DNA of 64,000 nucleotides from Eutreptiella sp. 'Long Island Sound 2002' (GCA_964036045.1 OZ038379.1:25916001-25980000), one strand, 5' to 3'; numbered from the stretch's first letter, positions 1,403-61,646 are shown. The notes: generated by a model from the letters alone, not told the origin. Program-made: numbers and translations.

Positions 1403-2044
1403 GCCTGACTGCTGGGACCGCGGCCGTGCTTGTGCAAGGGGGGGGGGGGGTAATTTGGGTGTTTCTGTTGACAAGTTTTCAACGGCTGGGTAAAATGTGA
1501 CCAGCTCTGGGATTTTGCTTGCTATAAGGGGTGAGTTTGGATATGTTCTTCAAGCTGTGGTAAATCACCCCGAAGAGAGGTTATGCAGGCATGGGCGCAT
1601 ACCCCAGTTTCTGGGGGTCATTCGCATCAGATACCCTATTATATGTCCAACCCCTTGTAAAATGATCCCTTTGGGGGACAAAATTCTCCCCCAACGAATT
1701 TTTTGATTTTGACCCCCCCCCCAAGCCTTAATTGATCAACCGGGGCGCTGTCCGAATGGCAAATCTACACGTAAGTGGGTGAATTTTACGAAAACGGCCA
1801 CTGTTTGGGCCACGGCGGTGTTTACAGGTGTAAATTGCGTGTAAATTGGTGTAAATTGATATGGCTCCACCATTTCTTGATGCAATTGAGCTTCTTTGTC
1901 TTGCAAGTTGTGTGCTTTTTGACATTTTCTCCACACTGTTGCCATTCGCACATGGTTGTCGCGGCACGTTTCGCGCGCACGGTGGGGTAGTGTAATCTAT
2001 GCATTGAAGAATGGTTATGAGACTTGGGAGTAGAACCAGTATTG

Positions 2045-2407
2045 GTGAGAGGGGTGGCCTCCTCCCCAAACTTGGTGGCACAACAACGTTGCTTTCAAGG
2101 GATGGGGTAGGGTAATGAACAATGTATGAAAAGACGAGAAGCTATGACCATAATGGTAGAAACTTTTATTAGGCAAATTGTAGCGCTGAAAATAGTCGGT
2201 GACAGGGGTGGCCTCCTCCCCAAACTTGGTGGCACAACAATGTTGGGTTCAAGGGATGGGGTAGGGTCATGAGCAATGCATGGAAAGAAGAGAAGCTATG
2301 ATTATAATGCAAAAACTATTATCAGGCAAATTTCAGAGTAGAAAAAGGTCAGTGAGAAGGGTGGCCCCCTCCCCAACTTTGGTGGCACAACAAGGTTGGT
2401 TACAAGG
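2045..2407 (+). repeat. Degenerate tandem repeat, ~154-bp unit, ~2.4 copies
   Basis: The motif GGGTGGCC(T/C)CCTCCCCAA(A/C)(C/T)TTGGTGGCACAACAA recurs at ~2051, ~2205 and ~2358, with similar sequence between copies. Confidence 0.85.
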
Positions 2408-3271
2408 GTGTCCTTCTTTCCCTTGCGGTCTCATTGCACCCCCCCCCCCCCGTTTTCTGTTCGATCACTCTTTTTTTGGGCTGTGACATGGGTGCGGCCG
2501 CTTGGCCCCGTTGCGCCTCAAGGTGCTGCTTGGATGCATTTTCCTGGCGTTGCTGAGGTCCTCCGGTACTTACATTCGGAGGCGGGTGGGTCTCTACGCA
2601 TCCAACACACTCAAGTCGCGCGCGCTGCCACAACCAACGCCATGCGGGACGGCTACGCCTTCACGTTTGCTGAGCCATCGTCTCTTGTGGCGGCCCCTGT
2701 GTGTTGATTTGGGCCCAGGTCCCATTGCACTTTAGGTCCCTCTATATCCCTCTATATCCCTCTATCCCTCTATATAGACCCCCCAACCAATGATGGGGGT
2801 TCTGGGTGCTATCTCCAATTTTCCAAGATCGGCCCCCCTGTGAGCCCACTTGTGAGGAATTGGCCGTGTACGAGTTGGCTGGCGCAATTTAGGGGTGATT
2901 CCCCAGCAACCCCAGGGACCATTGGGCCATTGTTGGGTAATTGTTTCGTGACAATGGCAGGATGTATAAACTCATGTAGCCCCAATTAGGCCCTCCTAGT
3001 GGTGCTTGTTGCCTCCCAAAGTGCCCTTTCGGCGTGTTTGCACTGGGATGGGTGGAACTTCGTCAGCCCATAGTGTACAACTTCCCCATTTTGTTGCTCG
3101 TCCTTTGTCAAGGTGCATTTTTGAAGGCAATAGAATTTTGACAAGAACAATGAAAATTTTTCTTGGGAGCGCTATTGGGTCCCACTGTATCCGAAGGACT
3201 AGCCACCAACAAAGAAGCAGTTGGGTACCAGCAAAGGGAAGGGAACTGTGTTTTGTAGCTGTGTGTTGTGG

Positions 3272-3289
3272 CTAGTTCGAGCCTCTTCA
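3272..3289 (+). repeat. Left target-site duplication of the LINE (18 bp)
   Basis: CTAGTTCGAGCCTCTTCA, identical to 14028-14045; the bases on either side differ between the two copies. Confidence 0.9.
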
Positions 3290-3456
3290 GGTGTTTTTGT
3301 TGCCCCTGCATGTGGTGACACTGCCACTGAGACTCTGAGACCCAGAATCTTACCGAAAGCAACAACTCTTGACCTACACAGGGCCCAGTGCCCTCGCCTC
3401 GCGCTCACACAGGCTTCTGGCCTCGCTGACACTGCCCTTGAGCGGGGCCATACAAT

Positions 3457-5487
3457 ATGTCGCCCATCACGCTGGACGACAAAGCGCTACGAGGGCTGCG
3501 CGACATCATCCGCCAGGAGGTTCAGGCGGCCATGGGAGCGACCTCACAACAGCAGCCAAGTGCAGCGGCTGGAGAGCGAAACACACCCACATCTGCAAAG
3601 AGCACCAGCAAAGGTGCAAGCAGATCACAAAACCCCACCCAATCCCAGGGGGCAGCAGGATCCAAGGCCAAGGCCAGATCACAGTCCCCAGCCCGCCAGT
3701 CAACCACTGGTGCAGGGAGCAAAACGGTGCGAGAAGATCCCAAAGACAAGGAAATTCGAGAGCTCAAAGACATGATCAAAGAGCTCACCGCCACGATCAA
3801 GGAGCTTCGGGCCTCCATTCGACATCCCAAGAAGACGTCAGACAACGAAGATGCAGCGGAGCCAACACAGCTGGCTCAACGGCTACGCACGTATGCGGAT
3901 GCAGCGGCCAAGGGGAAATCCTCCTCAGTGCAAAAGTCACAGGAAAGCAGCCAGTCCAGTGCTTATACGGTAGTCAAATCACGATCTGCTGTCAAAGTAC
4001 TTGGCAAGCCAAAAGATGTAGGTATGCCAGTGCAACCAACGCATGGAGTAGCTGCGGAGGAAGCACGAACCTGGCAAGCCTCTGCCCTACTACCATTGCA
4101 ACTCTGGAAAGAAGCCGAGAACAAACAACTTGGCCTTCCGGTGCTGAATCCCAGCAAACCACCAGCCGAATGGAAAGTCTCAGAAAGACCAGGCACCTTC
4201 CAAAGGGTGCTCATGCTAGGAGGCACAGCAGACTCATGTGCAGAACTCGCAGACATGGCTTTCACGTCCCATCCTCAGGTAGAACACATGGCTGCCATCG
4301 TCAACGTGCCAAATACAGCCGGAGTCAAAAAGGCAACTGTCGCGGACGCACTACGCCGCATGAGACTCACGCGCGCCGATCTAGATGTTCAGGGCTGCTT
4401 GCTAACCCTGGCAACCCGAATCACGCGGGCCGAGTGGGTCCACTCCGAGGGTCCGCCCAGGCCCATAGCAGATCAGCAACTATGGATGCAGTGGGAAAGG
4501 ACCACAATGGAACAAGACGACGAATCGGACCATCAGGAATCAGACACGGCGGAGCATGCCCCAGTGACCCCCTCGGAGAGGGAAAGTGGCTTCCACAAGA
4601 TATCCTTGCAGATAGATCCTCTTATGTGCTCGGATTCCGAACTGCCTCCGAACAGAACCAAAGGCTCTGCACAACGCTGGGTGAGGCAGCAAACGATGGA
4701 GTACCTGAAAACGTGCATGCAAGAAATGACACAGGCACCGCCAATGGAGATTTTTCGCCGAGCAGAACATTACTCAGTCACGATGGAGCTCCCACTGGAG
4801 GCTGCCAAAAGGGTGCTCATCGGGTCGGGCAAGCTGCAAGGCATCGAGGCAAGGCCGTGGATGTCGAAAGGATCTCCTGGACCTGGACTGGAAGCACGCA
4901 TTCTCTGGCTGAAAGCCCCCAACATGAAGAGCTCCAGCAACATATGGGAGATCCTTCACACCCAATACTGGTTTGCCGGTGTGCTGACAGGAGACGCTGT
5001 CGGCAGATGGGGTATCCGAATATGGGGAACAGAAGAACCAAGCGAGCAGCAAAGGACAGGTATTGCGAACCTGCTTGGAGCAGAGGCCCCCACCAAACGA
5101 ACACGCATACGGGTGTACGGATACCCGGCCGGTTTCGGCTACGGTACCACGTGGGCTCAAGAGGAGGCCGCACGTGTCTTTCCCTCAGGCAAGGTCCAAG
5201 TTCTTTCCTGCCAACACCTCGTCAGCGCGTCCATAACCAAGCCGGTGTTCGACATTACCGCAACGGGGGTGCCAACGGAATGGCAGGCGCACAAGCTGGA
5301 GTCCACCGACACCAGAGCAAACCCACGGATTTGGAGGCGGTGCGTGTCGCACAAACTCCGACCAGCAGCGGAAAGAGTTGGACGCCAAGAGAGACTACGT
5401 CTAGCCACACGGGCAGACGACGACCCAGAGACTACCTCTTTGCAAGACGTCGTGGAGGACAACCACGACATGGAGACGGGACAATAA
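3457..5487 (+). CDS. LINE ORF1 (gag-like nucleic-acid chaperone), 676 aa
   Basis: Intact ATG-TAA ORF at the 5' end of the element. It has a heptad coiled coil (KDKEIRELKDMIKELTATIKELRASI), the RTYADAAA motif often seen in LINE ORF1s, and a globular C-terminal half. Confidence 0.85.
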   Translation: MSPITLDDKALRGLRDIIRQEVQAAMGATSQQQPSAAAGERNTPTSAKSTSKGASRSQNPTQSQGAAGSKAKARSQSPARQSTTGAGSKTVREDPKDKEIRELKDMIKELTATIKELRASIRHPKKTSDNEDAAEPTQLAQRLRTYADAAAKGKSSSVQKSQESSQSSAYTVVKSRSAVKVLGKPKDVGMPVQPTHGVAAEEARTWQASALLPLQLWKEAENKQLGLPVLNPSKPPAEWKVSERPGTFQRVLMLGGTADSCAELADMAFTSHPQVEHMAAIVNVPNTAGVKKATVADALRRMRLTRADLDVQGCLLTLATRITRAEWVHSEGPPRPIADQQLWMQWERTTMEQDDESDHQESDTAEHAPVTPSERESGFHKISLQIDPLMCSDSELPPNRTKGSAQRWVRQQTMEYLKTCMQEMTQAPPMEIFRRAEHYSVTMELPLEAAKRVLIGSGKLQGIEARPWMSKGSPGPGLEARILWLKAPNMKSSSNIWEILHTQYWFAGVLTGDAVGRWGIRIWGTEEPSEQQRTGIANLLGAEAPTKRTRIRVYGYPAGFGYGTTWAQEEAARVFPSGKVQVLSCQHLVSASITKPVFDITATGVPTEWQAHKLESTDTRANPRIWRRCVSHKLRPAAERVGRQERLRLATRADDDPETTSLQDVVEDNHDMETGQ

Positions 5488-8400
5488 TGATGTCCGTACG
5501 GGCAGTGGCATTGCTGCGTCCAAGGGCATGCACGAGTCGGTACAAACAGCCGCCGTGCTACGCGAGACGGACACGTCCGCCGCGCGGGAAATCTTCAGGA
5601 TTCCTCTTGTGCATGCTGTGCCTTTTGCCACGGTGCTCTAACTGTAGACAATGTTGCCATACACCAGCCCTGAGTGCACGCAAGTGACCCCCCACTGAGC
5701 TGACGAGAGAGGACGCAATGAGAACCGCTCGGGCACGCAGCCCTGAAATGATGCTCCCCCTACCAGGGCTCTTACCACCCAGGACGTGCGACTGCCGCCC
5801 GGACTGCCTATTCCTGATGACAGGTACTATGTCTTATTCCATGGGACGGTCGCACAAAAGGCGAAGGTCGGACTCCAGCAGCGAGGAAGGTGAACGCCAA
5901 CATCGAAAGCGGCAGCAGCCGCAACAGCACACCCACATCCATGTCCACGTCCACCAGCCCCAACAGCGGCACCCAGATCGGTCGAAACGCCGCAGTGCAC
6001 ACCGAGAACGATGCAGGATTCAAGGCGAGACCAGACGGATGGAAAGCGCGCTGCAAGAGCTCGATGCCCAACAGGCAACTGAAGTCCAAGCAGCCCAGGA
6101 GGAGCAGCAGTCGGCCGCGCAGTACTCTGACAGGGCCCCTCCGATCCCGTTCCACGCTAACCCGCCGAGACAAAGGCCACGGACACCCAGCTACGAGCAG
6201 GTGATGGCCCGCCCACCACTACCCAGCTATGATGAGGTAGTGGGGATGACAGCAGACGAGGAAGAAGCAGAGCATGGCCCTAGCAGATCCGGACTCGCCA
6301 ACCCGTACTCCCTGGAGCAGCTGAGGGACATCTCGGCAGCGGTGCAGATGCAACCGGCACGGCCCACGGTGATCACCGACGTCCTGTACAAAACAGGCTC
6401 ATACATAGCCTTGGCGCCGGAGCCCCATCTTGCGCTGCATCATCGCGATGATTGGGTCAGAGACTGGGCCACGGATGTCGGACACCAGCTGGGTTTTGAC
6501 GACGCGCCAGAGCCCGACACGGTCAAGCAAGGGACCCATGCGGCGCCACGAAACTGGAGGCTGCGGCTGCGGGGAAGGAAACCCCAGAGACTTACTTTCG
6601 GCATCAGCTCCAACGCCAAATATGGAGTGTCCCAGTACGCATGGGCCTCGGGCGCGGCATGGCTGATCAGCCGCATCCACGCCCAAACAACAGCAGTGAG
6701 GCCGCCGTCACCGCCACCGGAGGACGAAGATGCCCAGCCGCCGGCATACGCGCCACGCCAAAAGTTTGTGGACCAGGTATGTGCAGACCTTGCTTGGCAG
6801 GTGCCTGAACGTGCGGTCCTCTCAGCAAGCGCTGATACATGCAGATACAGTACCCCCCTGCTCACACAAACTTGTCTTCTCACTTCCAGTGGCTCGACCC
6901 GGAATGGAAGCTGCAGCGAGGCTACCGAGACGGCAGATGACCGTGACCCGAAAATCCGTCAAGGCGCACCATCACCGCTGCCCATGCACACTCTCAACCC
7001 TGCCAGTGACGAGCAGGCCAGCATAGCTAAGACGGAGAGCTCCGCTAACCACCCAGCTAAGCCGTGCGCGAGATGGGAACGCCCGCCGCGTCACAGTGCC
7101 GAGAGACGGTCTGTGATGGCGAGAGTCGCCGGAATATTATGGACGAGTCGGGTAAGCCCGCCGTCCTCAGCAGCGGTGCCTGATGCACACTGCAATGCCA
7201 GTATTCACTGTCACTGTAACCTCAGAGCTTCTCTTCCTGACCCCTCCAGCATGCCTAACCGCCTGGCCTGCCTTGCTCCTTTTAGCCCCCTGCTCCTGCT
7301 CATGGATCAGTCAGATCAGAATCCCACCCCAACGCAGTCGGCCCACAACTTGGCACAGCTGGTGCCACCTGACCAGTGGGCCGCGCTGCATGTGCGCGCA
7401 CACACACGCGCACGCACGCATCCACACTGGAAGCGTGACCAGATCCTACGCTGTGGTGACATGCACCCCAACCCAGGACCCACCTCTCTGGCACTCATCA
7501 ACGTGACGGCCTTGCGAGCACACCACCATGAAGTGCTGGATTTGCAAGAGGACATCGTGGCGCTCACGGAAACACGGCTCACGCAAGGGGCCCAGAATGC
7601 GATGGCCTTCATGGCAAGACAGAAGGGGTGGCAACCCTTTTGGGGAGCCCCCCTACTATCCAAGACAGGAGGCATTTGGGGAGCTGCCCCAGGAGGGACG
7701 GCCCTTTTGGTACGGGAAAAGTGGCCGGCAAAGCAAGCTCAGCGGGACCCGGGATGCACACTCAGTGAGGAACTGTGGAATTCAGGCAGGTGGCTGCACG
7801 TCATCGTGACCCCAGCGGATGGTAAACGCCCCCTGAACGTGATTGTGGTGTATGGGATCCCAGGAGACCACAAGCTAAATGGCAAGCTATGGGAGGCAGT
7901 GCTGACCCAAGTTGCAAAGCTGGGGAACTCCCCCTTTCTGATAGCCACGGATGCCAATGTCCAACTAGATCATTATCGCTGCATGCCTAACCTCATGATG
8001 ACGGAGCTGCTGTCGGGGCGCATTGTGGATGTCGACCTCTTACATGCACGGACCACGGGACAGGACTGCCAGTGCTCGTACCACAATGGCTCCATCAAAC
8101 AGAAACCAACCAGAATTGATGGTATTTTGGCGGATGCCAAGACGGCCAGTGCCATCATGAAAGTCTTGCCAACTGAAAGATTTCCCGTGCCTGGACACAA
8201 GCCGGTCACCTTCACCTTCAATTTCAAGCAGTCTGCCCAGCGGGTTCTGAAGTTTGTGCGGTTACCACCCATGATACCAGCCCACCTGCAGAAACGCAAG
8301 CGGGACCAAATAGTGAAAGACGTCACCGAACCCTACGTGGCGATATGGGAGAAAGTCCTAGACAATGAGGCGTCCACGGCAGATCAACTGTGGGACCTCT

Positions 8401-11400
8401 GGACATGGCTGGCTGAAGAAACCATGCTGGTCCTGACCATGGCACCGCCGCCAGTGGTCAGGACAGGAATATGCCAACTACCACTGGCTCCCCAAGAGTT
8501 GCCGAGAGGACGGGGAACCAAGAAGATGCTCAAGACGGTGGAGCTCACGCCGAAGCGCATGACGTCGTCAGGACTCCCGTGCACTGCACCAACCAAGGAG
8601 ATGTCCGCCCTGCTGAGCGCCCTAGTGCCAGTGATGAAGTGGGCGGCAAGCAGGGAACAAGCCGTGGTCCCTGTTATGGGCCCCGTACCGCGAGAGGTCC
8701 TCAACAATTGGAAGGCGATACGCAGGAGAGCCCACCGCATTCTTCAGCTCATCTCCAAAGGGCAATGTGTAGCAGAGCACCAAGAACTACTGCGCACGGT
8801 GATGGAGGCCCCAGAAAGTGCACCCATGACCATCACCGACTTGGTCCGGCTCAGTGATAAGATTAAAATGCTGAGTAGGCGGCAACTAGCTCAAGAAGAA
8901 AATAAGAGGCACCAAGATTGGAGAGAATGGATTGAGGAGACCTGGACCACATCACCTGGGAAGGTGTACCAATGGATCAAAGAGGACAAGTACACGCCCA
9001 CGGTCCTGATCCAGAAAGAGGACGGCACCTTGACTGGCAATGTGCCCGAAATGGACCTCGTGATACACCAAAAATGGGACCCGATAATGAGACAGCACGC
9101 GGATCCGGCGCTGCCGGAGCCGGAAACTTAACCCTTCTGGCGCAAGTTCGGCAAATATGTGGAGCATCACCAGATGGAATGTCAGCCCATCACCGCGGAA
9201 CGCCTTTGCCGTCAGTTCAAGGACATGAAACGCGGCCGGGCCACAGGTCTAGACGGATGGACTGTTGTGGACATGCGGAACATGCCATGGCCGCTACTGC
9301 AAATGCTGGCTCAGCTGTTAAACTGGGTCGAATCCCATGGCGTATGGCCTGAGCAACTTGCCACCGGGTACATTCCGCTGATCCCCAAAGGCGAGGGCAG
9401 TGAGCCGCTGCAGCTCAGGCCGCTGTCGGTGCTGTCTGCGATTTATGGCGCCTGGTCCGGTATCCGACTCCGTGACTGCCTCATCTGGCAGGAGAAGTGG
9501 GTGCACCGTAATGCATTTGCCTTCAGGCCGCAGAAGAGCGCCCTGGACGCAGCAACTCTGCTAGCCGCCCTCATTGAGCGAGCACACCTACTGAAGCAGG
9601 CATTATCTGGCGCTGGCACTGACTATGTGAAGTGTTTTGATTTGATACCACAACAAATCTCCTTCCGGATGGCACGAGAGTTCGGCCTGGACCCCAAACC
9701 GCAGGCGGCATTGGAGGCCATGTATCAACAACTACACAGGGCATTCAAAATAAACGGGGCGGTGGGCTCCTTTTTTCACGCCACGAACGGAGTACTGCAA
9801 GGGTGCGCCATGAGCGTACTCATGATCAACATGCTCACCACAGTCTGGATGCGTGCCGTAGACGAGCTGGAAGGAGCTATCTCAGTGACGGTACACAGCC
9901 TGCCGCCCATACCGCCCAAGCTGGAAGAGCCCAAGGAGCTGAGATACAGACGTAAACCCTCCCCGTCCACCGCGGTGTCCTGCCTTCGGCCACCACCGGC
10001 CCCGAGCAGGTGCGTTATGAAGACCTTCGGCTCGGGGATTGACCAGTTTGAATATTGGGAACACTCCAACCCCTGCACATGTGGCCATGGACCTCCACCT
10101 CCGCCTCAGCAATCGCAGCCGCCACACCCCTCCTCCGAACCTGAGCCCGAACGCGATGGGCTGGTGGAAGAAGAAATGGCAGCATCGGGGGAGTCCCCTC
10201 CCCACAGCCCAGTGAAGCTCAGGGGTGCTCAACCCCAGCCACAAGAGGCGGGCACGATCCAGGTCGGGTCCATGGGCTACGCAGATGACACGTATCCGCT
10301 GCGATCTGAGGGCCAATACATGGCGCCGGTAATGCAGCTCACTGATGAGTGGCTAGCTCTTACTCTGCAAAAAGTGAACCCCAAGAAGTCACTGTCCATA
10401 CAAGTACGACAATCCAAGGAAATTGCCCGCAAACACACGGTACTCCAAGGGATCTCACTCCGCCTCCAAGCTGAATTCCGCTCGCTGGGGGTGGGTATTC
10501 GTACCAGCCTGACCAGGGGGACTGGCCCGCTCCTGAAAAAGAGGACATCCAAGGGGATACACCTGCTGTCCAGAGTGAGGGGTGCACAAGGAGGCTTCAG
10601 CCGGCGAACGCACATCATTGCCACTCTGGTACAAGCCGCAGCCCTATGGGGGACCCCGGGGGCGGAGGTATCCCGGAGGGATTTACAGAGTCTGGAGACG
10701 GCAGTGCTCCACAGTTTGTGGGGCACCTCGAGGCCAGGTAGGGCGAAGGAGATCATCTTCGTGCTGCTGGTACAGGGACACCGGGTGTCTCCTCACATGA
10801 AAACCACGTATGACAGGGTATGTTGGCTCCTCGTGGTGGCGCGCACGCCAGGCACCCTGCAGGTTGTGGTGCAGTCGTGCATTGAAGCTCGGCAAGCACA
10901 GGTACGACCCACTACATCAGGACCGGTTCAACGAGCCCTCCTGGAGTTGGAGAGCCTTGGCTGGAGGCAGGCGGATCATTGGTGGGTCTGGAATGTGCCA
11001 GGGGTGCCCGAAGAAATAGACATGACGCTCATAAATGAGGACAAATTCAAGCATATCCTGCGGGACTCCATCAGGCGGCGGGCCTAGCTCTTGCTGGAAG
11101 ATGGTCGACCGCGACAATTTCAAGGCATCTTAGGGGCCCTAGACAGGGAGGCATGTCAAATCCTTCTATCAGAGGGCACAGAATTTGATAAGGCGCTGCT
11201 GCGGGGCTGGCTCACAGGGGCGTTATGGACGGCTGCCAGGGCGCATGCGAAGGGCCTCAGGGCGACACCGCTATGCCCATACTGCTCGCGGCAACAAGAA
11301 GAAGACGACGAACACATCTTGTGGGCCTGCCCAGCCTGGGGCATACATCGATCCGGTGCCTGGCGCTCGCTTATGAGAACGGCGAGGGCACTGGGGCTAT

Positions 11401-13892
11401 CAGACCAGATCAGTAGTTGGCCCACGTGCTTACGGATCTGTGGCTTGATGCCGGAACACCTGTCGCACGGCATCCCCAAGGGTCAGGTGCACGACTTCAT
11501 GTACGGTTTTCATAGTATGGTGCTGCAAATTCTGCGAGCGCGGGCACACCGGGAAGATGTGCAGCTCTTTGACCAGCCTAAGACGAAACAAGGCAGAGGG
11601 TACCCATTCTGGCAGTTCATCGGGCCGCTACCACGGCCGGAGCACAGGGAGAAGCTGCGGATTCGCCAACCCACAGCTCAAGAGTGGCGGTGGGACTCCG
11701 ACTTTCGTGACGATCTGTTACTATGGGTCAACGAGCTGGTCTGGATACCAGGGAAAGGGCAAGTCTCCTTCATGGAACTAGCAATGGACTTTGAGTGCTT
11801 CGCGGCGCGCACCCTGCCGGCCTCACCCCAGGCTGTGTATCGGGCAACTGCCCTCCCGCTACCAGAAAGGGCAAGGGTCCTAAAGCTTGCCCTAGCGACC
11901 TTGCAAAAGCTGAGCGTGGCTGGGGCCGTGCCACCAGGTGGTGTACTTACCAAATGCTCCTCCCTAGTCCCACTGGGGGCCCGCACATTAGTGGGTGTGT
12001 CTGCGAGACCATACTTCACACGGCGCCTGGACATGCTGAAACTTCTACAAAACCTGCAAGAGTACTGTGAGCTGCGCTGGACGGCTGTGCTACAAGCACC
12101 GCCCCCCTCACCGGACACGAGACGGAGAAATGCCCAACGGGCCAAGGAACGGCGGGAATCAATGGAGTCCAGCCCCAACATCAGGGAGCGCATTCCCAAG
12201 CTCAAGTACACATCGTCTCTGCTGCCTGCTATGCACACCCCCAGGCATCTCACCGGCAGAGGAGGAGGTAAGAAGAGCACCGCTTTGTTTGCGGCTGACT
12301 ACTTTCCGGCACACCGCAACCCTGGAGCTCCCCCTACGCGGCCCTACCGGTTGCTCCGGCCTGCCAAGCAGGCGGTCCCGCCTCCACCTGATGTAGCTGC
12401 AGTGGGCTCGAGTCCACAAGCAGCACTGCCGGCGGGGCGAGCGGCAGCGCCCAACGTTTTGTCTCAGCGCGTAGATGCGCTAACTCTCCCGGATGCACCT
12501 CTAGGATGGGCTCCGCCGTCGCCGTCGCCCCCGGTGCAGATGGAATACACCTCGGAGGAAGGACCCTCTACCCCGGAGGTCTTCTCCTCGTCGTCCTCGT
12601 GGGAATCTGAGCCCATCAACACCGGGGGAAGCTGCCGACGGGCGACAGCGGGGCCCCGAGGCGGCCCGACGCGGTCCTCACCGCAACACGCAGTGCCCCG
12701 CACAGGAGCTCCCAGGGCCCGATCCGTTCACCGGTCAGGGAACCCGGCGCTGAGGAAGTCACGGCGAAGGGCACCACCTGCGAGAGTGCCCCGAGGGGTC
12801 AAGAGGCGGCAGTCGGTCACGGCACAGCCGGGGAGCCCACGGCGCAAGCGACCCCAGCTACAGCAAGGGGATGCGCGGTCACACACGGCCCTGGAGGCCC
12901 CAGACCGCCACGGGAGCCCAGCCGGAGCCCCCCTCCCCATGTCCAGGCATGCACTCTCATACCTACAGCTCACAGGAGCTATCACTCCTGAACGTGCGTC
13001 ACGCATAGTGGTGGTAAGCACCCCAGAGGGGCAGCGCACCCCACTACCGACACGCAGCTCGGAGCAGCCTCCACGCGAAAAGGGACGCGACATCCCCCCG
13101 GGGATAGCAAGGATGTTGCAGCAGATCCGGATGCCCCCAGCAAGGCCACAACCGCTACAGCCCCGAAGGGAACCACGGCCCAGCGAGAGGACTTCACGCA
13201 CCGCCGTCCTGCCCCCTGGCCCTCCGATGGGGTTCAACGTAGCTAGCACCCCGTCTCCGCGGGTGCTGAGCAGGCCAGGGCAATTCTCGCCATCTCCGGC
13301 ATGGTCGCCGGCGGTGACTTCCAGTTGGCACTCAGTGCGGCACGTGACCCCGGAGCATTGGTCGCCCGCATGCACACCAGGGGGGGGGTCTAACCGACAG
13401 CAGGATTCACCTCACCTGCCCCCTGTCCTGCTGGCGCCCCTATTTGAGAGCGCAATGTCTACCCCGCGAAGGGACAGCACTCAGAGTGCGTCTGATGAGG
13501 ACGTGCAACAGTATGCCGTCCGGTGTTCTACCCCCCCCGATCTGCCCCCCACCCTGCTGGCTCCACTTTTTGAGGGCGTGATGTCTGCCTCGCGAGCGGG
13601 CAGCACTCATCGTGAGTGCGATGAAGACATGGGTCAGTATGAAGTCCAGTACTCTACCCCACCCTCCGTGGGGGAGTGGCCCCCCCCTAACCCCTTTACT
13701 CTTCCCTCTCTTCGCGGAGCACAGCGTCTCTGCACGGAATTGCCTGGCATGGCCCGACAGGGCCAGGGATGGGTTCGTGAACCCCATGCACGACACTCCA
13801 CCATGCTGTACAGCATGCAGGGAGGTGCTCTGTCTTCCAGCAGCGCGGAGGGGTTCATGAAGCATGGACGGGCCTCACGTGAGGCAACCTAA
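5487..13892 (+). pseudogene. LINE ORF2 polyprotein (N-terminal extension - 2A-like - APE endonuclease - RT - CCHC finger - C-terminal extension), ~2,800 codons, three in-frame stops
   Basis: Track ORFs 5718-9131, 9159-11087 and 11091-13892 share one frame. They are separated only by TAA 9129-9131 and TAG 11085-11087; the same frame extends back past TGA 5685-5687 to ATG 5487. EN motifs: LINVT, DIVALTETR, IATDANV, PTRIDGIL, PGHKPV. RT motifs: ATGLDGW, LIPKGEG, LRPLSVLS, TDYVKCFD, VLQGCAMS, GYADD (10278-10289). Zinc finger CPYC-x9-H-x4-C at 11274-11330. Confidence 0.92.
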
Positions 13893-14027
13893 AGGACGGA
13901 GGGGGGAGCCTCTTGTCATACAGGGCGGCAGCTCTCCAGAAACCCGCGCGACTTGCCCCTTGGGTGAGTCTGGGGCTGGAATGGGTAGAAGCCCCATGGA
14001 CTATTGCTCCTTAATATGATTTCCTTC

Positions 14028-14045
14028 CTAGTTCGAGCCTCTTCA
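14028..14045 (+). repeat. Right target-site duplication of the LINE (18 bp)
   Basis: Identical to 3272-3289. Confidence 0.9.
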
Positions 14046-20680: not shown

Positions 20681-22912
20681 GGATTGATCCAGCGGTCATC
20701 GCCCCCACCATCCTCTTAGCCTGGGAACGGGACAAGGTGCCCAGCCAGGAACCCCCGCGTGTTGGCCTCGCCTCAATCGGGGGCAGGGCCCGGACCTCCG
20801 AGATGGCCAAGGTGGTTGACATGCCGACAAGAAGGAAGTGCACGGCCCCTCGCCCTGCGCGAGGCAAGGTGTCCTAGCCGGGGGCCGCGGCAGCGAGCAA
20901 CATCTCAGGTTCGGGCGATCACCTAGATCCGAATGAGAGCATTCCGACGCAATGTTGGACGACGGGGAGCAGGTGGAACACCCTGTCCCGGCGGGCGAAT
21001 TGGTTCATGCAGCCCCTGGGACGGTGGACCCTCCGTTGCTCCCTTGTCCGGCTCTCGGGGCTGCGCCCGGCAGCGTGGCCGCTGATGCTGCTGTGCGTGC
21101 ACATGGGTCCTGGAGGCCATAGCACTGCCGCGCAAACGGCCCAGAGAGCTGTTGCCGCCACCGGCAAAGACGCTGGCCCCACCGCCGTGCGAGCCTGGTG
21201 AAATCCATGCCGGACCTTTCTTCGAACAGGCAAGGCGAGCTATGCCACACGCCCAAACGCAAGCCGCACGACTCTACCTAGAAGAGGTAGCGCAGGCACT
21301 CGCTTGACGGGCCACCGCCTGGAAGTCCCTCTTATTGGCGCACCATCACGAACACTTGTGCTAGCAAACGTATTTCCTCTACAAGGAACAAACGTCGCGG
21401 TGGTACGTAGAGGCGCAACATGCGGTCTACCAATTGTCCAGGATGGCGGACTCTCGCCGACTGCGCTTCCGCCAGTGGCGCACGGCCGTCCTCCCCGAGG
21501 CGCGGTCCATGGAGTTGCGCAAGCTCGCCGCAGCATCCTCGTGTTTGGAGTAGGCTCATCGTTTGCGGTCCTCTACCATCCAAGCGGACGAAGCGGCCGC
21601 GAGGCGGCATATGTCTCAGGTGCACGTGGTGACCCTGACGGCCTTACGGCGGACGACTTTGTCGGACCCCCGATGCGACGTCCGTGAGACAATGCACAGT
21701 GCATGAAGCGCCTTCGGGACGAGAACCCAAATGCGACGCACAAGCAGCACAAGACAGAGGAAGCAGAGGTTCCCAGTGATCTCCGGGATATGGAGATCCC
21801 GCTCGAGGACATGGGCGATGTCATTGTCTTAACTGGATTGTAACACCCCTGAGAGGTCCGGGAGGACATGCACACCCATGCAAACGGGGCGACAGGGGTG
21901 GGGCAAGGCGCAGGACTCGTTCCTCCCGCCACTCCGCCGCAGCCGTCTTGGTGAGGGTAGGTCATGCCTAACCCAAACCCAAAGCTGGCCCTGTCACTGA
22001 CCCATGACCGGCTATGTGTACTCTCGATAGACACTTGGTGGAACTTCGGTCACGAGTGTCCATGCTCTCACCATTGTAGCAGAGAGCGGCAAGCAACAAA
22101 CGACAACCAACCCAGACCCCACCCATATTTGACACAGTCGATAATTGTTGGGACACGTGAAGAGTGCAGTAAGGGCTCATAGGCGGCCAAGAGGGCCAAA
22201 ATTTTCATCCAAACCCTCATTAGAGAGTGATGTTACCAGTGTGCCGCTTGGGCAGTCCACCGAATTGCAGCCCATGGTTCGGAAAAGGTTAGTTGCAGGG
22301 GCAATGGTCGCATTTGGACGCTCCTTGTTTAACCAGCGGTATTCACGGAGTTTCATACCCCACTTAGTCACTTGTCTTCTAAAGGATCTCCAATTGTTGT
22401 GAGCAGATGGTGATACTGGATTCACATTATGTTTACAAAGGTATAACCCACTGGTCGCCCAAGTGGCGACGCCATAACTAGAGAGTTCCGTCAGGGGGGG
22501 TTGGTCACAAGGATCTGTGGGCATCCATCTGAAGTTCAGGGAGGAGGCCGGCAGTTTGGTTCAAATTGTCTGCACACCATGTATACATTTCGGATTGTTT
22601 GTGGAATCAAGCGTCAGCCAAATTGGTGACAATTGCTCAGTAGTCGTGAGAGTGCACACCACATTTCTGTCAAACGTCAAAATGTACCGCAAACCACCGT
22701 GCTACGCTTCTGATGTGTGACGCCAACGGGCAGACAAGACAGGTGCCCAACTGCTAGAGCGACCAAGTCTATGTATTGACCATTCATGGCCAGCAAAGGA
22801 AAGATGGTGTGGTCCAACGGCCATTGGGAAGCTTCAGATACACAGATGTGCGTGTTGTGTGCCCAAATTTGTATTTGCCACAGACCACTCCAGCGTGTTG
22901 CTGCGCATCGCC

Positions 22913-23853
22913 ATGGGCACCAGCAATTGGTATTTTTTCGTGATGACGGGGGGCTTAATGGTGTGCGGCACTTTCAACAGCCTGATTGCAAAACTCATCT
23001 ACGGTCTGAAGTCCGAAGGAGTGCACCATTTGGTCCACAACTTTGAAAAGCCATGGTTTCAGACCACCAACATGTTCTTGGGGATGCTGCTGTGCCTTCC
23101 CCTGTTCTATGCGAAAACGGTGATGATGGCGCGGATGCATGGCCGGGACGAAGAGAACAAGCCCCTGTTGCCTGGATCGCCGACCTCCCCCCTTTCGGAT
23201 GACAGCAAAAGCCAGTCCATTCACGCCGTCATCGCTGCCACTGCAGTGGCAGACCTGGCAGCAACGGGGCTCATGATGACCGGGCTGGTGTTCACCACGC
23301 CCTCCGTGTACCAGATGCTGCGTGGCGCGGAGGTGGTCTTCGTCGCCGCCCTCTCCATTCTGTTCCTGAAGTCGCATCTGGACCAGCACATGCGCATGGG
23401 CATCGTCATCACGGTGGTGGGGATCACGCTGGTTGGGGTCGCCAGTTGCGTTGGCGACAGCGGCACCGCCCAGGGATCGTACTCCCTCGGCATGCAGGTG
23501 CTCGGGATCGTCCTGATTCTCCTGGCCCAGCTGGTGGCGGCCGTCCAGCAGGTCGCCGAGGAGTTTCTGCTGCAGGACGTCCGCATGGACGCACTGGAGC
23601 TCGCCGGCTATGAAGGCCTTTGGGGCGGGCTGCTGTGCGTTGCGGTATTCCTGCCGTTATTCTATCTCCTTCCGGGGGGCGACCAAGGGCGTTTGGAGGA
23701 TTCATACGACAGTCTGCTCATGTTGTACAACAGCCGCATGATTGTGCTCGCGGAAGTCCTCAACTGCCTCAGTGTACTTTCTTATAATTACTTTGGTCTC
23801 ACGGTGACACAGGACTTCACGGCCATGCACCGTGTCATCATTGAAGCCTCCAG
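22913..23853 (+). CDS. SLC35F6: SLC35F6-like drug/metabolite (nucleotide-sugar transporter family) membrane protein, exon 1
   Basis: Multi-TM protein with family-like motifs FEKPWFQTTNMFLG, SVYQMLRG, QQVAEE, GYEGLWG, YNYFGLTVT, HRVIIEASR. ATG 22913 is the likely start. Joined to 34659-34974 it gives 1257 nt = 418 aa + stop. Confidence 0.85.
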
Positions 23854-23858
23854 GCATC

Positions 23859-23899
<41 letters not shown>

Positions 23900-23993
23900 G
23901 TCTCGTTCTGTGTTTGTGCGTGCGCATGTGTAGCCCATGGGCGTGTGATTATGTGTGACGGTCAACTACCTCCGTGCCAATTTTTTCTGACAT

Positions 23994-24078
23994 TGCATCG
24001 AGCTGGATTCGAACCAGCGATGTCTTTGCACAGCGAGATTATGAGTCACGGGCCATTTGTCCCCCCGGCCACAGATGC
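23994..24078 (-). tRNA. tRNA-like cloverleaf (probable pseudogene or SINE head): CAT anticodon, long variable arm
   Basis: Minus strand GCATCTG TG GCC GGGGGGACAAAT GGC C CGTGA CTCATAA TCTCG CTGTGCAAAGACATC GCTGG TTCGAAT CCAGC TCGATGC A. Perfect T arm, 3-bp D stem, one mismatch each in the acceptor and anticodon stems. Confidence 0.65.
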
Positions 24079-24264
24079 ATCAGACAGATGAATGATAAGC
24101 ATTGATTGTGGGCAGCGATGTGCAGCTCTGTTACACCGGGGGAGTCTCCTGCAGGTTCCACCCACACCGTTCTGCTCTCACCTGACTCTGATCACTTGCG
24201 GTCGGGGTTACGGGACAGTGCACTAGTGCAAGGGTTGGGGTAAGGGCTACGCCGCTGCATGGGT

Positions 24265-59579: not shown

Positions 59580-60055
59580 GTACAGCCTCGTGCTTGTGCT
59601 GGGGCCGGGAGGCCAATGCGCTGGACCAGCCGCCTCTTGTCTTCGGGCCAATGTGATTTGTCAGTGCCGAAGTGCAGAAACCGCGTTGAGCAACGGTCAA
59701 ACGCTTTGACCCAAGTTTCGTTCAAGGGCATCTGCCATTTTACTTCGCCTCCCATGGCCCCCATGTTTAGAAATCTCATTTGGGTGGGGGCCTTATGTGC
59801 CTTGTTTTTTGAGGCAGATTGAGATGGCTGCCTTCTGCCGTTGGGGCATGCTTTGGCCATGGAAGCCTGTGGTGCACTACCCACAGTAGGCGGGGTGGTG
59901 ATCCATCTCCTTTGCCAAGTGCTCATAGGTGTTGCAGCCCACCTCCACCGCCCCGTAGCCCTCACGACACAGCCCCGTCTCCCCCACGTCCGACAGCCGT
60001 GGCCCTGCAACGCGTGCAGCACGTCGTGTGGCATTCCCCCGCCCCCTCTTCACAG

Positions 60056-60264
60056 GACGATGCATCGAGGGCCCCCCCGGTCCACAGGCAGGGGGTCAGC
60101 CGGGAGCAGTTACTGCGGTGGATGGAGGAGGAGGACAGGCGCATGGCCCAGCACTGGCGCCCCTGCCGCCCGGTGTGCGATCATCAGTTGTATGTGGCCG
60201 ACCCGGACCGTGTGGTCTTGTGGGACGACGTGGAGCCCTATTTATTTTATTTATATACGCCGAG
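60056..60264 (+). CDS. NRDE2: NRDE2 exon
   Basis: CACAG|; ...LLRWMEEEDRRMAQHWRPCRP...ADPDRVVLWDDVEPYLFYL, matching the W..E..R...W.P.R / DP.R.VL..D pattern; donor AG|GTGCCT. Confidence 0.88.
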
Positions 60265-60510
60265 GTGCCTCACCCGCCGCTCCTCGGTCCCCACCCCCTC
60301 TGCCACGCCCTGTGCCACGCTCCGTGCCATACATCCCGCGCCATGCATCGCGCTCGGCCCAAACGCCCGCTGCCCCGCCCTCTATCACGCCCTTTGCGAC
60401 ACGTATCCCCCACACCAAACGCCCTGCACCACGCCCTCCGCCGTGCCCTGTGCCATGGTACGCGCTGTGGCCTTGTCGGGTCTGATCTGTCGCTCGCCAT
60501 CGTTTGTCAG

Positions 60511-60619
60511 ATTGCGGATGTATCTTATATTTGTACTGCTGGAGTTCATGGGGGTTTCAGTCACGTACAGTCAGCGGGTGGTCACTGACCCCTTGGTGCA
60601 GTTCTCCCTTTCGTCCAAG
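60511..60619 (+). CDS. NRDE2: NRDE2 exon
   Basis: TGTCAG|; (R)LRMYLIFVLLEFMGVSVTYSQRVVTDPLVQFSLSSK; donor AAG|GTCTGC; phase-compatible. Confidence 0.78.
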
Positions 60620-61646
60620 GTCTGCCCCGTCTTCACTTGGCTTCCAGGGCCTCACAAGGTGGGCCCCTGGCCGCATGCCACTGCAGGCCTCTGTTGCAGG
60701 GCTGCGCTGTGCCTATGCGCAGGCCACCGCAGCCGAAGAGCATGGCCGCAAATGCATGCGCGAACACCCACACCCGCACTCACGCTCGACCGCCCAGCCC
60801 ACCCCCTGCACGACGTTGGGTCCACCCGATGATCCCACCGGCCGCCGGTTGATTTAGGACTAACGAGGCCTTGCCCTTCGATGTTGGGGCTGGAATCCGT
60901 GAGGAACAGACGCGGTGGTTGCGGAGGGCTGGACGCGAGATTGAAGGCAAACCAGACAGACAGTCATGACGGCAGCACCACACAGACAATGCAAACCTCC
61001 GACCAGCGCGGGAGCAGCCCATCACGCAACTGTGCAACTGACGTCGCTTGAGCTTCCCCGGCCGGTGGTTGGCACGCAGGACGTACTACCGAAGATGTTT
61101 AAGACGGGCCGCTACTTCACGTGGCGCCAGGGACCGGGTCCAGAGCCTCCGTTGCTGAAGTCGGCAACGGATGTGTTGGTGCGGGCCACCCCCGGGGGCC
61201 ACCGCCATCAGTTCGTTGGTGTACGGCGCTGCCGAGGGGCTGGAGGACGTCCAACAAAAGGCCCCATCGATTCCCGCCGACCCACTGTTACCCCATCGAC
61301 CACTCAACTGCCCTCAGTGACGTGTTCCGTTGAAGGCCAGAAGAGCTTTTCGAGACCCCATGCCCCCCCCCCTCCTCCCCATTGGACAAGTCATCCGGGG
61401 GCTCCGGTGACACAACCAAAACACGTTCGGACCCACAGAGCGTCAGAATGAGCAGTAGCGAGAGGCCATAGGCGCCGCCAAAGGCAAACCATCTGATACC
61501 GAGGCCTTGTGCCCACCCCCCCCCCCATTGGCCCGAGGTCAGTCACTGCGAAGACCCGGTCCTCTGAGGGGCCTTCGTTGCACGTGCTGGGGCCAGGCGG
61601 GGTGTGGGCCGTGGGGCCTGCACTTCACCGTCCTCCCTCTGCCCAG

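Follow-up and report, generated by a model that had tools for sequence, protein, structure and literature searches.

ORF1 of a euglenid LINE lies inside a stop-free leader of the ORF2 frame that runs to a 2A-like motif

Introduction

How long interspersed nuclear elements (LINEs) translate their second open reading frame (ORF2) from a bicistronic RNA, and how the scarcity of its product (ORF2p) arises, is a long-standing open question (PMC3708506, PMC3894237, PMC5381506). Here, we analyze a LINE at 3290-14027 in a 64,000-nt stretch of the 2.28 Gb genome of Eutreptiella sp. 'Long Island Sound 2002' (the window, to which all positions refer), whose ORF1 lies wholly within a stop-free stretch of the reading frame of ORF2. 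This frame, with positions mod 3 = 0, is referred to as frame 0, and continues beyond ORF1 to a 2A-like motif that directly precedes the APE endonuclease.

Several described systems share parts of this layout. In gag-pol genes, the overlap is confined to the 3' end of gag and involves a slippery heptamer with a structure. Glyco-Gag of murine leukaemia virus and the C' protein of Sendai virus start at upstream non-AUG codons. For RNA viruses, initiation at an upstream non-AUG codon, combined with leaky scanning to an AUG in another frame, has been described (PMC3542737). Bicistronic LINEs (mouse L1, lizard L1 and SART1 with its UAAUG) have short overlaps or stop-start coupling (PMC5381506, PMC3708506); the ORF1/ORF2 overlaps described for LINEs are limited to the ORF ends, 3' for ORF1 and 5' for ORF2, and in some mammals a long antisense ORF runs over ORF1. 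A 2A sequence stands directly before the APE in L1Tc and Ingi of trypanosomes and in CR1, Crack, Rex1 and STR of animals (Odon et al. 2013, PMC3708506; Luke et al. 2013, PMC3894237), and the presence of 2A in LINEs correlates with the absence of ORF1 (PMC3708506, PMC3894237).

Like the bicistronic LINEs, the Eutreptiella element has an ORF1 upstream of an ORF2 with APE and reverse transcriptase (RT) on one RNA, and its young family carries a TAATG. Whereas those elements overlap at ORF ends, here the overlap takes in the whole of ORF1 (2 kb) from a point upstream of its start, and the TAATG is not conserved across the clade. The earlier note on this DNA had called full nesting of ORF1 unusual for LINEs; full-text literature searches returned no LINE whose ORF1 is nested within the frame of ORF2. 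As in gag-pol, the enzyme lies in the -1 frame of the structural gene and would be scarce, but no heptamer is conserved and the overlap is complete. L1Tc and Ingi also have hosts within the Euglenozoa, and the setting of ORF2p amount by 2A could apply here as well. However, these and the animal 2A LINEs are reported without ORF1, whereas in the Eutreptiella element and its relatives a conserved ORF1 of 650-700 aa sits inside the leader in another frame. The single-ORF 2A LINEs have a leader of a few dozen codons and the motif ExNPGP, as opposed to 0.7-1.4 thousand codons and HP(N/H)PGP here. As in the viral non-AUG cases, one mRNA would yield two products in a ratio set by a weak near-cognate codon upstream and a strong AUG downstream. 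The viral overlaps are short and each product is functional, whereas here a putative non-AUG start would give access to a long stretch free of amino acid constraint that leads to the distal enzyme. As far as the searched literature shows, a LINE that combines a 2A-headed enzyme with an ORF1 inside the leader of that enzyme's giant frame is new, and points to an undescribed route to ORF2p.

Results

A stop-free second frame spans the whole of ORF1

3290..14027, + strand: full-length non-LTR (long terminal repeat) retrotransposon of 10,738 bp, with a common 5' end, a target duplication and APE, RT and zf-RVT inside
3339..5684, + strand: stop-free stretch of frame 0, first part of the leader of a giant ORF
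3457..5487, + strand: ORF1, 676 codons, in the +1 frame relative to frame 0 and wholly inside the stop-free stretch

Frame 0, which is -1 relative to ORF1, is also the frame of three ORF2 pieces at 5718-9131, 9159-11087 and 11091-13892. Ahead of the open stretch, frame 0 has a stop 46 nt into the element (3336); the first stop after 3339 is at 5685. This stop map confirmed the starting observation of the earlier note, that the -1 frame of ORF1 is stop-free over 3339-5684 and shared with ORF2. Expected stop numbers were obtained from 5000 synonymous-codon shuffles of ORF1, a control that the note had proposed, and from codon-order shuffles. The synonymous shuffles gave 19.9 +/- 3.5 stops in the -1 frame and never reached the observed zero (0/5000), while codon-order shuffles gave an expectation of 19.6. 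The depletion was not confined to one part of ORF1, as each quarter was depleted of -1 stops on its own (P 0.002-0.012).

The same pattern was visible at the level of codon junctions. ORF1 contains 80 T-ending codons and 165 codons starting with AA, AG or GA, and none of these 165 is preceded by a T-ending codon, compared to 80 of the 510 other codons; an avoidance counted by hand over part of ORF1 in the earlier note thus extends over its full length. In ORF2, T-ending codons precede 40 of 260 AA-, AG- or GA-starting codons. Only the junctions T-AA, T-AG and T-GA are absent from ORF1, with T-GC, T-GG, T-GT, T-AC and T-AT being present or enriched, which ruled out a general avoidance of T-G and T-A junctions. 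The -1 frame of the three ORF2 pieces, reported earlier as often broken, contained normal numbers of stops (40 vs 34, 20 vs 16 and 26 vs 24 expected). When frame 0 was instead taken as the coding frame, the ORF1 frame was also more open than expected. Both frames are therefore kept open across the overlap. Chance and base composition were ruled out by both types of shuffle, by the -1 frame of ORF2 and by a homologue without depletion (L038, below), and fusion with an upstream host ORF by the frame-0 stop at 3336 and by flanks that differ between copies.

Frame 0 forms one giant ORF in the young family

7530..8141, + strand: APE endonuclease domain (Pfam Exo_endo_phos, E 1.3e-4, 22.3 bits, just under the cut-off of 24.5)
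9411..9863, + strand: reverse transcriptase domain (Pfam RVT_1, E 9e-11, 42.3 bits, cut-off 29.6)
11211..11333, + strand: zf-RVT-like zinc-binding motif after RT (Pfam PF13966, E 3.8e-4, below cut-off)
5685..5687, + strand: private nonsense mutation in frame 0
9129..9131, + strand: nonsense mutation in the giant ORF, read through in sister protein P0013 and copy L032
11085..11087, + strand: nonsense mutation in the giant ORF, read through in sister protein P0007 and copy L031
13890..13892, + strand: stop of the giant frame-0 ORF

Sister copies were compared over positions 1800-7200, and stops further 3' were checked through sister proteins. The stop at 5685, which ended a 772-aa ORF in the earlier note, is present in the window copy, but it is a private mutation rather than a family feature: it is absent in 27 of 27 ungapped sisters, so that in all of these frame 0 continues into ORF2. 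As the stops at 9129 and 11085 are not family features either, frame 0 of the family is a single ORF of ~3,500 codons (3339-13892). Frame 0 is open across the ORF1 overlap in 22 of 28 sisters, and 17 of 28 have both frames intact over 3339-5750. The window element is accordingly a slightly damaged full-length member of a young LINE family, with three nonsense mutations in the long frame; it is a dead copy in which ORF1 is intact.

Three predicted proteins from other copies mix the two frames. In P0006, an RNase H domain is fused to the frame-0 leader (3339-3575) and then to the ORF1 frame (3577-4218), and P0003 and P0005 are chimeras of ORF1 and frame 0 from frameshifted copies. All three are probably gene-caller artefacts, which still indicate that the frame is open in those copies.

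Stop depletion is conserved across diverged lineages

Homologues comprised decayed copies from the same genome (L032, L033 and L034) and contigs from other samples (L035 to L038), of which L035, L036 and L037 are 2.7-3.5 kb long. L040 was left out as too decayed, internally deleted and without a clean 5' end. Values are identities of ORF1 and stops in its -1 frame.

L032, same genome: 86-88% identical to the window; 2 stops vs 18.1 expected, with 19 in the third frame
L033, same genome: 29% identical; 2 stops vs 10.8 expected
L034, same genome: 35-42% identical; 4 stops vs 12 expected
L035, another sample: 28% identical; 0 stops vs 9.3 expected
L036, another sample: 28% identical; 0 stops vs 6.8 expected
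L037, another sample: 27% identical; 0 stops vs 15.9 expected
L038, another sample, most distant: 23-28% identical to the others; 13 stops vs 17.1 expected, which is normal

Stop depletion is conserved across lineages, six of them beyond the window, and the suggestion of the earlier note that stops are selected against in frame 0 holds well outside the copy for which it was made. The depleted ORF1 lineages are 25-32% identical to each other, and the four intact lineages together contain 0 stops where 52 are expected. In L035, L036 and L037 the frame is open to the contig end. The DNA of L036 and L037 had no match in the Eutreptiella genome, and that of L035 matched it only over ~250 nt at 66-70% identity.

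A more distant LINE (L039; ERZ25071330, 1-5707), with an RT 40% identical, has a conventional layout: its unrelated ORF1 (610 aa) shares the frame of APE-RT, from which a single stop (1833) separates it, and no alternative frame is open. As L038 is not depleted and L039 is ordinary, the trait is not a consequence of ORF1 protein sequence or base composition.

Selection acts on the ORF1 protein and on the openness of frame 0

Substitution rates were estimated pairwise between the window and the diverged copy L032 (84% nucleotide identity). ORF1 is under purifying selection, with a ratio of nonsynonymous to synonymous rates (dN/dS) of 0.09 and a synonymous rate (dS) of 0.68, similar to the dN/dS of APE (0.12, dS 0.73) and RT (0.10, dS 0.86). 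Over the same codons, frame 0 had a dN/dS of 2.2 and an amino acid identity of 62%, compared to 88% for ORF1. Variation among 24 sisters agreed with this, as differences in the overlap numbered 110, 71 and 70 by ORF1 phase and were concentrated at ORF1 third positions; ORF1-synonymous changes made up 41% (28% expected), and frame-0-synonymous changes were below expectation. The overlapping frame is thus without amino acid constraint, and selection acts only against stops. Its predicted product is basic, with a high content of R, G, S and A; it had no tblastn match in L033, and Pfam searches with this product and with ORF1 returned no matches. An overlapping gene with a conserved product, one of the options raised earlier, is unsupported given the dN/dS of 2.2 and the missing cross-lineage similarity. 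The over-conservation of ORF1 synonymous sites predicted alongside it was not seen either, since ORF1 dS is close to that of APE and RT. A lower divergence of the ORF1 region among sisters was considered as a sign of extra constraint and dropped, because six outlier copies with unrelated downstream sequence inflated the contrast and the sisters had been chosen by similarity to the same region.

The ORF1 product (676 aa) is a real folded protein. A profile search placed its homologues in 176 clusters, and its AlphaFold2 model has N-terminal helices and a predicted local distance difference test score (pLDDT) >90 for most of residues ~190-630. Foldseek matches of the model were weak and to proteins with multiple RNA recognition motifs (RRMs), which suggests that ORF1 probably encodes an RNA-binding protein with several RRM-like domains. 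A sequence search of solved structures with ORF1 and a search for look-alikes in the Atlas both returned nothing.

The long frame leads to a 2A-like motif abutting APE

5487..7430, + strand: second part of the leader, a weakly constrained spacer open in frame 0 only, without Pfam match and of varying length between lineages
7431..7469, + strand: 2A-like (StopGo) motif ILRCGDMHPNPG-P directly before APE, with NPGP at 7458-7469

Between ORF1 and the enzyme, the frame crosses a spacer with a dN/dS of 0.45 and an amino acid identity of 62% (5487-7430), compared to 83-86% for APE and RT, and its variation among sisters showed no codon periodicity. From the ORF1 stop to the 2A-like motif it measures ~650 codons in the window, ~130 in L033, ~180 in L037 and 20 in L035.

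The motif itself, which across the clade reads CGD(V/I/M)HP(N/H)PG-P and abuts APE, is reached by the frame in five of six lineages with DNA that far. The earlier note had recognized the open frame but had not linked it to this motif, which is key to the layout. L032 and L035 have exactly GDVHPNPGP before APE, and L033 and L034 have decayed variants. In L037, GDVHPHPGP lies ~180 codons past the ORF1 stop and the contig ends three residues on. In L035, the frame runs to the contig end and reaches the motif and the APE N-terminus 20 codons past the ORF1 stop; the first AUG after that stop lies within APE, beyond the conserved residues of its N-terminus. Because of this, ORF2p cannot start after ORF1 in L035, and if the motif acts as a 2A, a ribosome must already be translating the long frame inside ORF1.

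StopGo activity is inferred from matches to published 2A-like sequences. GDVHPNPGP has been reported as the 2A-like motif of yadokariviruses (PMC10817634), and class B 2A sequences have a proline before the N/H position, some being active with either residue (PMC12338488). The canonical class A core D(V/I)ExNPGP is not matched, as the core here is D(M/V/I)HPNPGP, with histidine replacing glutamate. Likeness to class B and yadokarivirus 2A lies in the proline before N/H, which all lineages have, N or H at position 4, and the terminal PGP. A further class B feature is a tryptophan ~16 residues upstream (PMC12338488); it is found at position 18 in the window family, including L032, further upstream in L033, and is absent in L035 and L037. 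The described class B and yadokarivirus motifs belong to RNA viruses, whereas the present one belongs to a retrotransposon and is a putative 2A.

In the decayed copy L033, a ~230-nt tandem duplication (L033:8101-8445) just before the motif shifts the long frame, with the peptide LAGWL...GWPKQYDLQ appearing twice, in two frames.

The long frame has no usable AUG start

3290..3456, + strand: 5' leader, with a terminus homologous to that of the distant family L033 and no AUG in any frame over 3339-3457
5485..5489, + strand: TAATG, in which the ORF1 stop overlaps a frame-0 ATG, present in 28 of 28 young copies

In every lineage, the long frame opens upstream of the ORF1 AUG, by ~100-190 nt, and has no AUG before it. 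Across lineages, 560-1406 nt and 4-19 other-frame AUGs separate the ORF1 AUG from the first AUG of the long frame, which ruled out leaky scanning to a frame-0 AUG. Stops are nonetheless missing from this early part: 3457-4169, which precedes the first frame-0 AUG, contains 0 vs 7.1 expected, and the first 100 ORF1 codons of the four intact lineages contain 0 vs 7.4 expected. Once the frame has opened, no AUG precedes that of ORF1 in the intact lineages, and the ORF1 AUG carries a -3 purine. Frame-0 near-cognate codons in the 5' leader of the window are CTG at 3417, 3426 and 3432, TTG at 3369 and 3438, and ATA at 3450, and in all lineages at least one CUG with a -3 purine precedes the ORF1 start.

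Other means of entry are less consistent between lineages. TAATG is absent at the ORF1 stop of L032, L033, L035, L036 and L037 and is therefore not conserved in the clade. The earlier note found no canonical X XXY YYZ slippery site; heptamers do exist in ORF1, namely A_AAC_CCC (3630) and A_AAC_CCA (5319) only, but these are weak types and their position is unconserved, those of other lineages being mostly C/G runs at unrelated positions, with none in the first 40 codons. The frameshift fusion that it proposed would consequently be possible only with a shift at the very start of ORF1, and of its three proposed mechanisms a non-AUG-initiated giant ORF2 fits best. The missing upstream AUG, the early stop-free codons, the weak heptamers and the unconserved TAATG together favor near-cognate entry in the 5' leader.

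Two further features were observed near the 5' end. A mini upstream ORF (ATG-TGG-TGA, 3310-3318) lies in the ORF1 frame 20 nt from the element 5' end in all aligned sisters but one, which has a 15-nt deletion there; the homologous position of L033 reads ACG TGG TGG, so that the mini-ORF is not a conserved feature of the clade. The 5' terminus (GGT.T.TTTGTT...CA.GTGGTG) is conserved between window 3290-3335, L033:5808-5860 and L037:1-40, whose ORF1s are only 27-29% identical, and may be an internal promoter or translation signal.

Discussion

The probable explanation of these observations is a single giant ORF that is entered upstream of or at the ORF1 start, most likely at a non-AUG codon, and whose leader is shed by StopGo; the APE-RT enzyme is proposed to be the 3' part of this frame rather than a separate downstream cistron. 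Most scanning ribosomes would start at the ORF1 AUG and yield abundant ORF1 protein (ORF1p), while a minority would enter the long frame at or before this point, presumably at a CUG or another near-cognate codon in the 5' leader. These ribosomes would translate a throw-away leader of ~700-1,400 residues, release it at the 2A-like site and go on to ORF2p. A stop in the leader would abolish ORF2p, so that active lineages would purge stops there, while its amino acid sequence would be free to drift. That frame 0 is translated at all, and the site and kind of entry, are read here from sequence patterns.

Several points weigh against this explanation. A waste product of 1,380 residues is costly. 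No single near-cognate codon is conserved or aligned between lineages, CUG is a common codon, so that its presence proves little, and a frame that opens 100-190 nt ahead of the AUG does not greatly exceed what chance would give in DNA this rich in GC. The motif also differs from D(V/I)ExNPGP, with its N replaced by H in L037 and R in L033. Finally, TAATG is fixed in the young family and could serve ORF2 by termination-reinitiation, which would make upstream openness redundant in that family.

The main rival to near-cognate entry is a start at the ORF1 AUG followed by an early -1 slip, either at one programmed site or at many low-level sites, with the fusion split from ORF2p by the 2A-like site. 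We consider this unlikely. It would account for a long frame without an AUG start and for the -1 relation, which is that of gag-pol, and X_XXY_YYZ heptamers occur at 3630, 5319 and in other lineages. Yet their weak types, shifting positions and absence from the first 40 codons argue against a programmed site; a late site would need no openness upstream of it, whereas the first 100 codons are stop-free, and diffuse slippage predicts weak selection at the 5' end, which is not seen. Moreover, the frame opens before the AUG in every lineage, while the gag-pol overlap lies only downstream of the shift site.

Less probable still is that ORF2 is translated by termination-reinitiation at TAATG, or from an mRNA of its own generated by processing or trans-splicing, with the open frame as a functionless by-product. 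The TAATG of all 28 young copies would fit reinitiation, the GC-rich DNA a by-product, and trans-splicing has a precedent in the host, which adds a leader to its mRNAs. A presumed 3' part of the euglenid spliced leader heads another LINE, at L031:7451-7469, ~100 nt before its first ORF; the leader pattern was not found at the 5' end of the present element. Arguments against reinitiation are given by the five lineages without TAATG and by L035, which lacks an AUG between the ORF1 stop and the APE interior. A by-product would not survive a dS of 0.68, nor divergence to 25-32% ORF1 identity with 0 stops in place of 52, and composition was controlled by the shuffles, ORF2 and L038.

Least probable is a functional overprinted protein (e.g., a basic, disordered, RNA-binding one) for whose sake the frame is kept open: both frames are indeed open over 2 kb in many lineages and the product is basic and R/G/S/A-rich, but its dN/dS of 2.2 and 62% identity (ORF1, 88%), ORF1 synonymous sites that are not slowed, the lack of detectable similarity between families or of a Pfam match, and a frame that in all cases runs on into the 2A-like motif and APE all speak against it.

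Returning to the giant ORF with near-cognate entry, we tentatively put forward a broader proposal for the clade. These euglenid LINEs might make APE-RT through a non-AUG start, passage of 0.7-1.4 thousand meaningless codons through the -1 frame of ORF1, and shedding of the leader at a class-B-like StopGo site, a route that would be new for retrotransposons. Overlap, weak start and 2A would jointly set the ORF1p:ORF2p ratio, and over 2-4 kb the sequence would be under no selective requirement other than to stay free of stops.

The clade thereby offers a natural, testable alternative for LINE translation, in which the enzyme forms the distal part of a giant frame over ORF1 and would be set free by a 2A-like site. 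The published correlation of 2A with missing ORF1 is called into question as well, as an ORF1 may be hidden in another frame of the leader. For the detection of overlapping genes, it provides a clean natural case of a long frame selected only for openness, which existing methods would miss because they look for synonymous constraint. In addition, HP(N/H)PGP 2A-like motifs are extended to euglenid retrotransposons.

Classification of the element and other features of the window

3272..3289, + strand: target-site duplication, 5' copy, 18 bp, whose identical bases recur at 14028-14045
14028..14045, + strand: target-site duplication, 3' copy, matching 3272..3289

The element is an APE-type non-LTR retrotransposon (LINE), with a LINE-type RT, APE upstream of it, dispersed copies and a target duplication. 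Its 5' end, which begins GGTGTTTTTG, is common to 30 genomic copies, with unrelated sequence upstream; sister-copy homology likewise stops upstream of 3290. At least 40 dispersed copies share 97-100% identity and have unrelated flanks. No long terminal repeats were found in the element, which ruled out an LTR element or provirus. The 3' end (...TTTCCTTC) has no poly-A run or microsatellite repeat, which does not exclude LINE membership as some LINE clades are tail-less. APE is N-terminal to RT and 83% identical in L032, and its N-terminus is recognizable in L033 and L035; the solved structure closest to RT is human LINE-1 ORF2p (E 2e-8). CpG transitions made up ~13% of the differences between copies (3300-7200, 24 sisters), about the share of CpG sites; without an excess of such transitions, there is no sign of methylation-driven decay of the repeat.

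The LINE headed by the presumed spliced-leader sequence (L031) is on assembly ERZ25074135, which matches the Eutreptiella genome at 100% identity through L033. The RT of this LINE shares 50% identity with that of the window element in its first part and 92% in its last, a pattern suggestive of a chimeric element.

A 126-bp tandem repeat (2 copies, 75% matches) lies at 13416-13664 in the C-terminal part of ORF2, and 154-bp tandem repeats (2.4 copies) at 2045-2408 in the upstream flank, outside the element and not common to sisters. An Rfam search of the whole window returned nothing. Host ORFs in the window include a long single-exon ORF at 22859-24091 (410 aa, EamA/nucleotide-sugar-transporter-like) and one with an NRDE-2 domain at 59819-60832.

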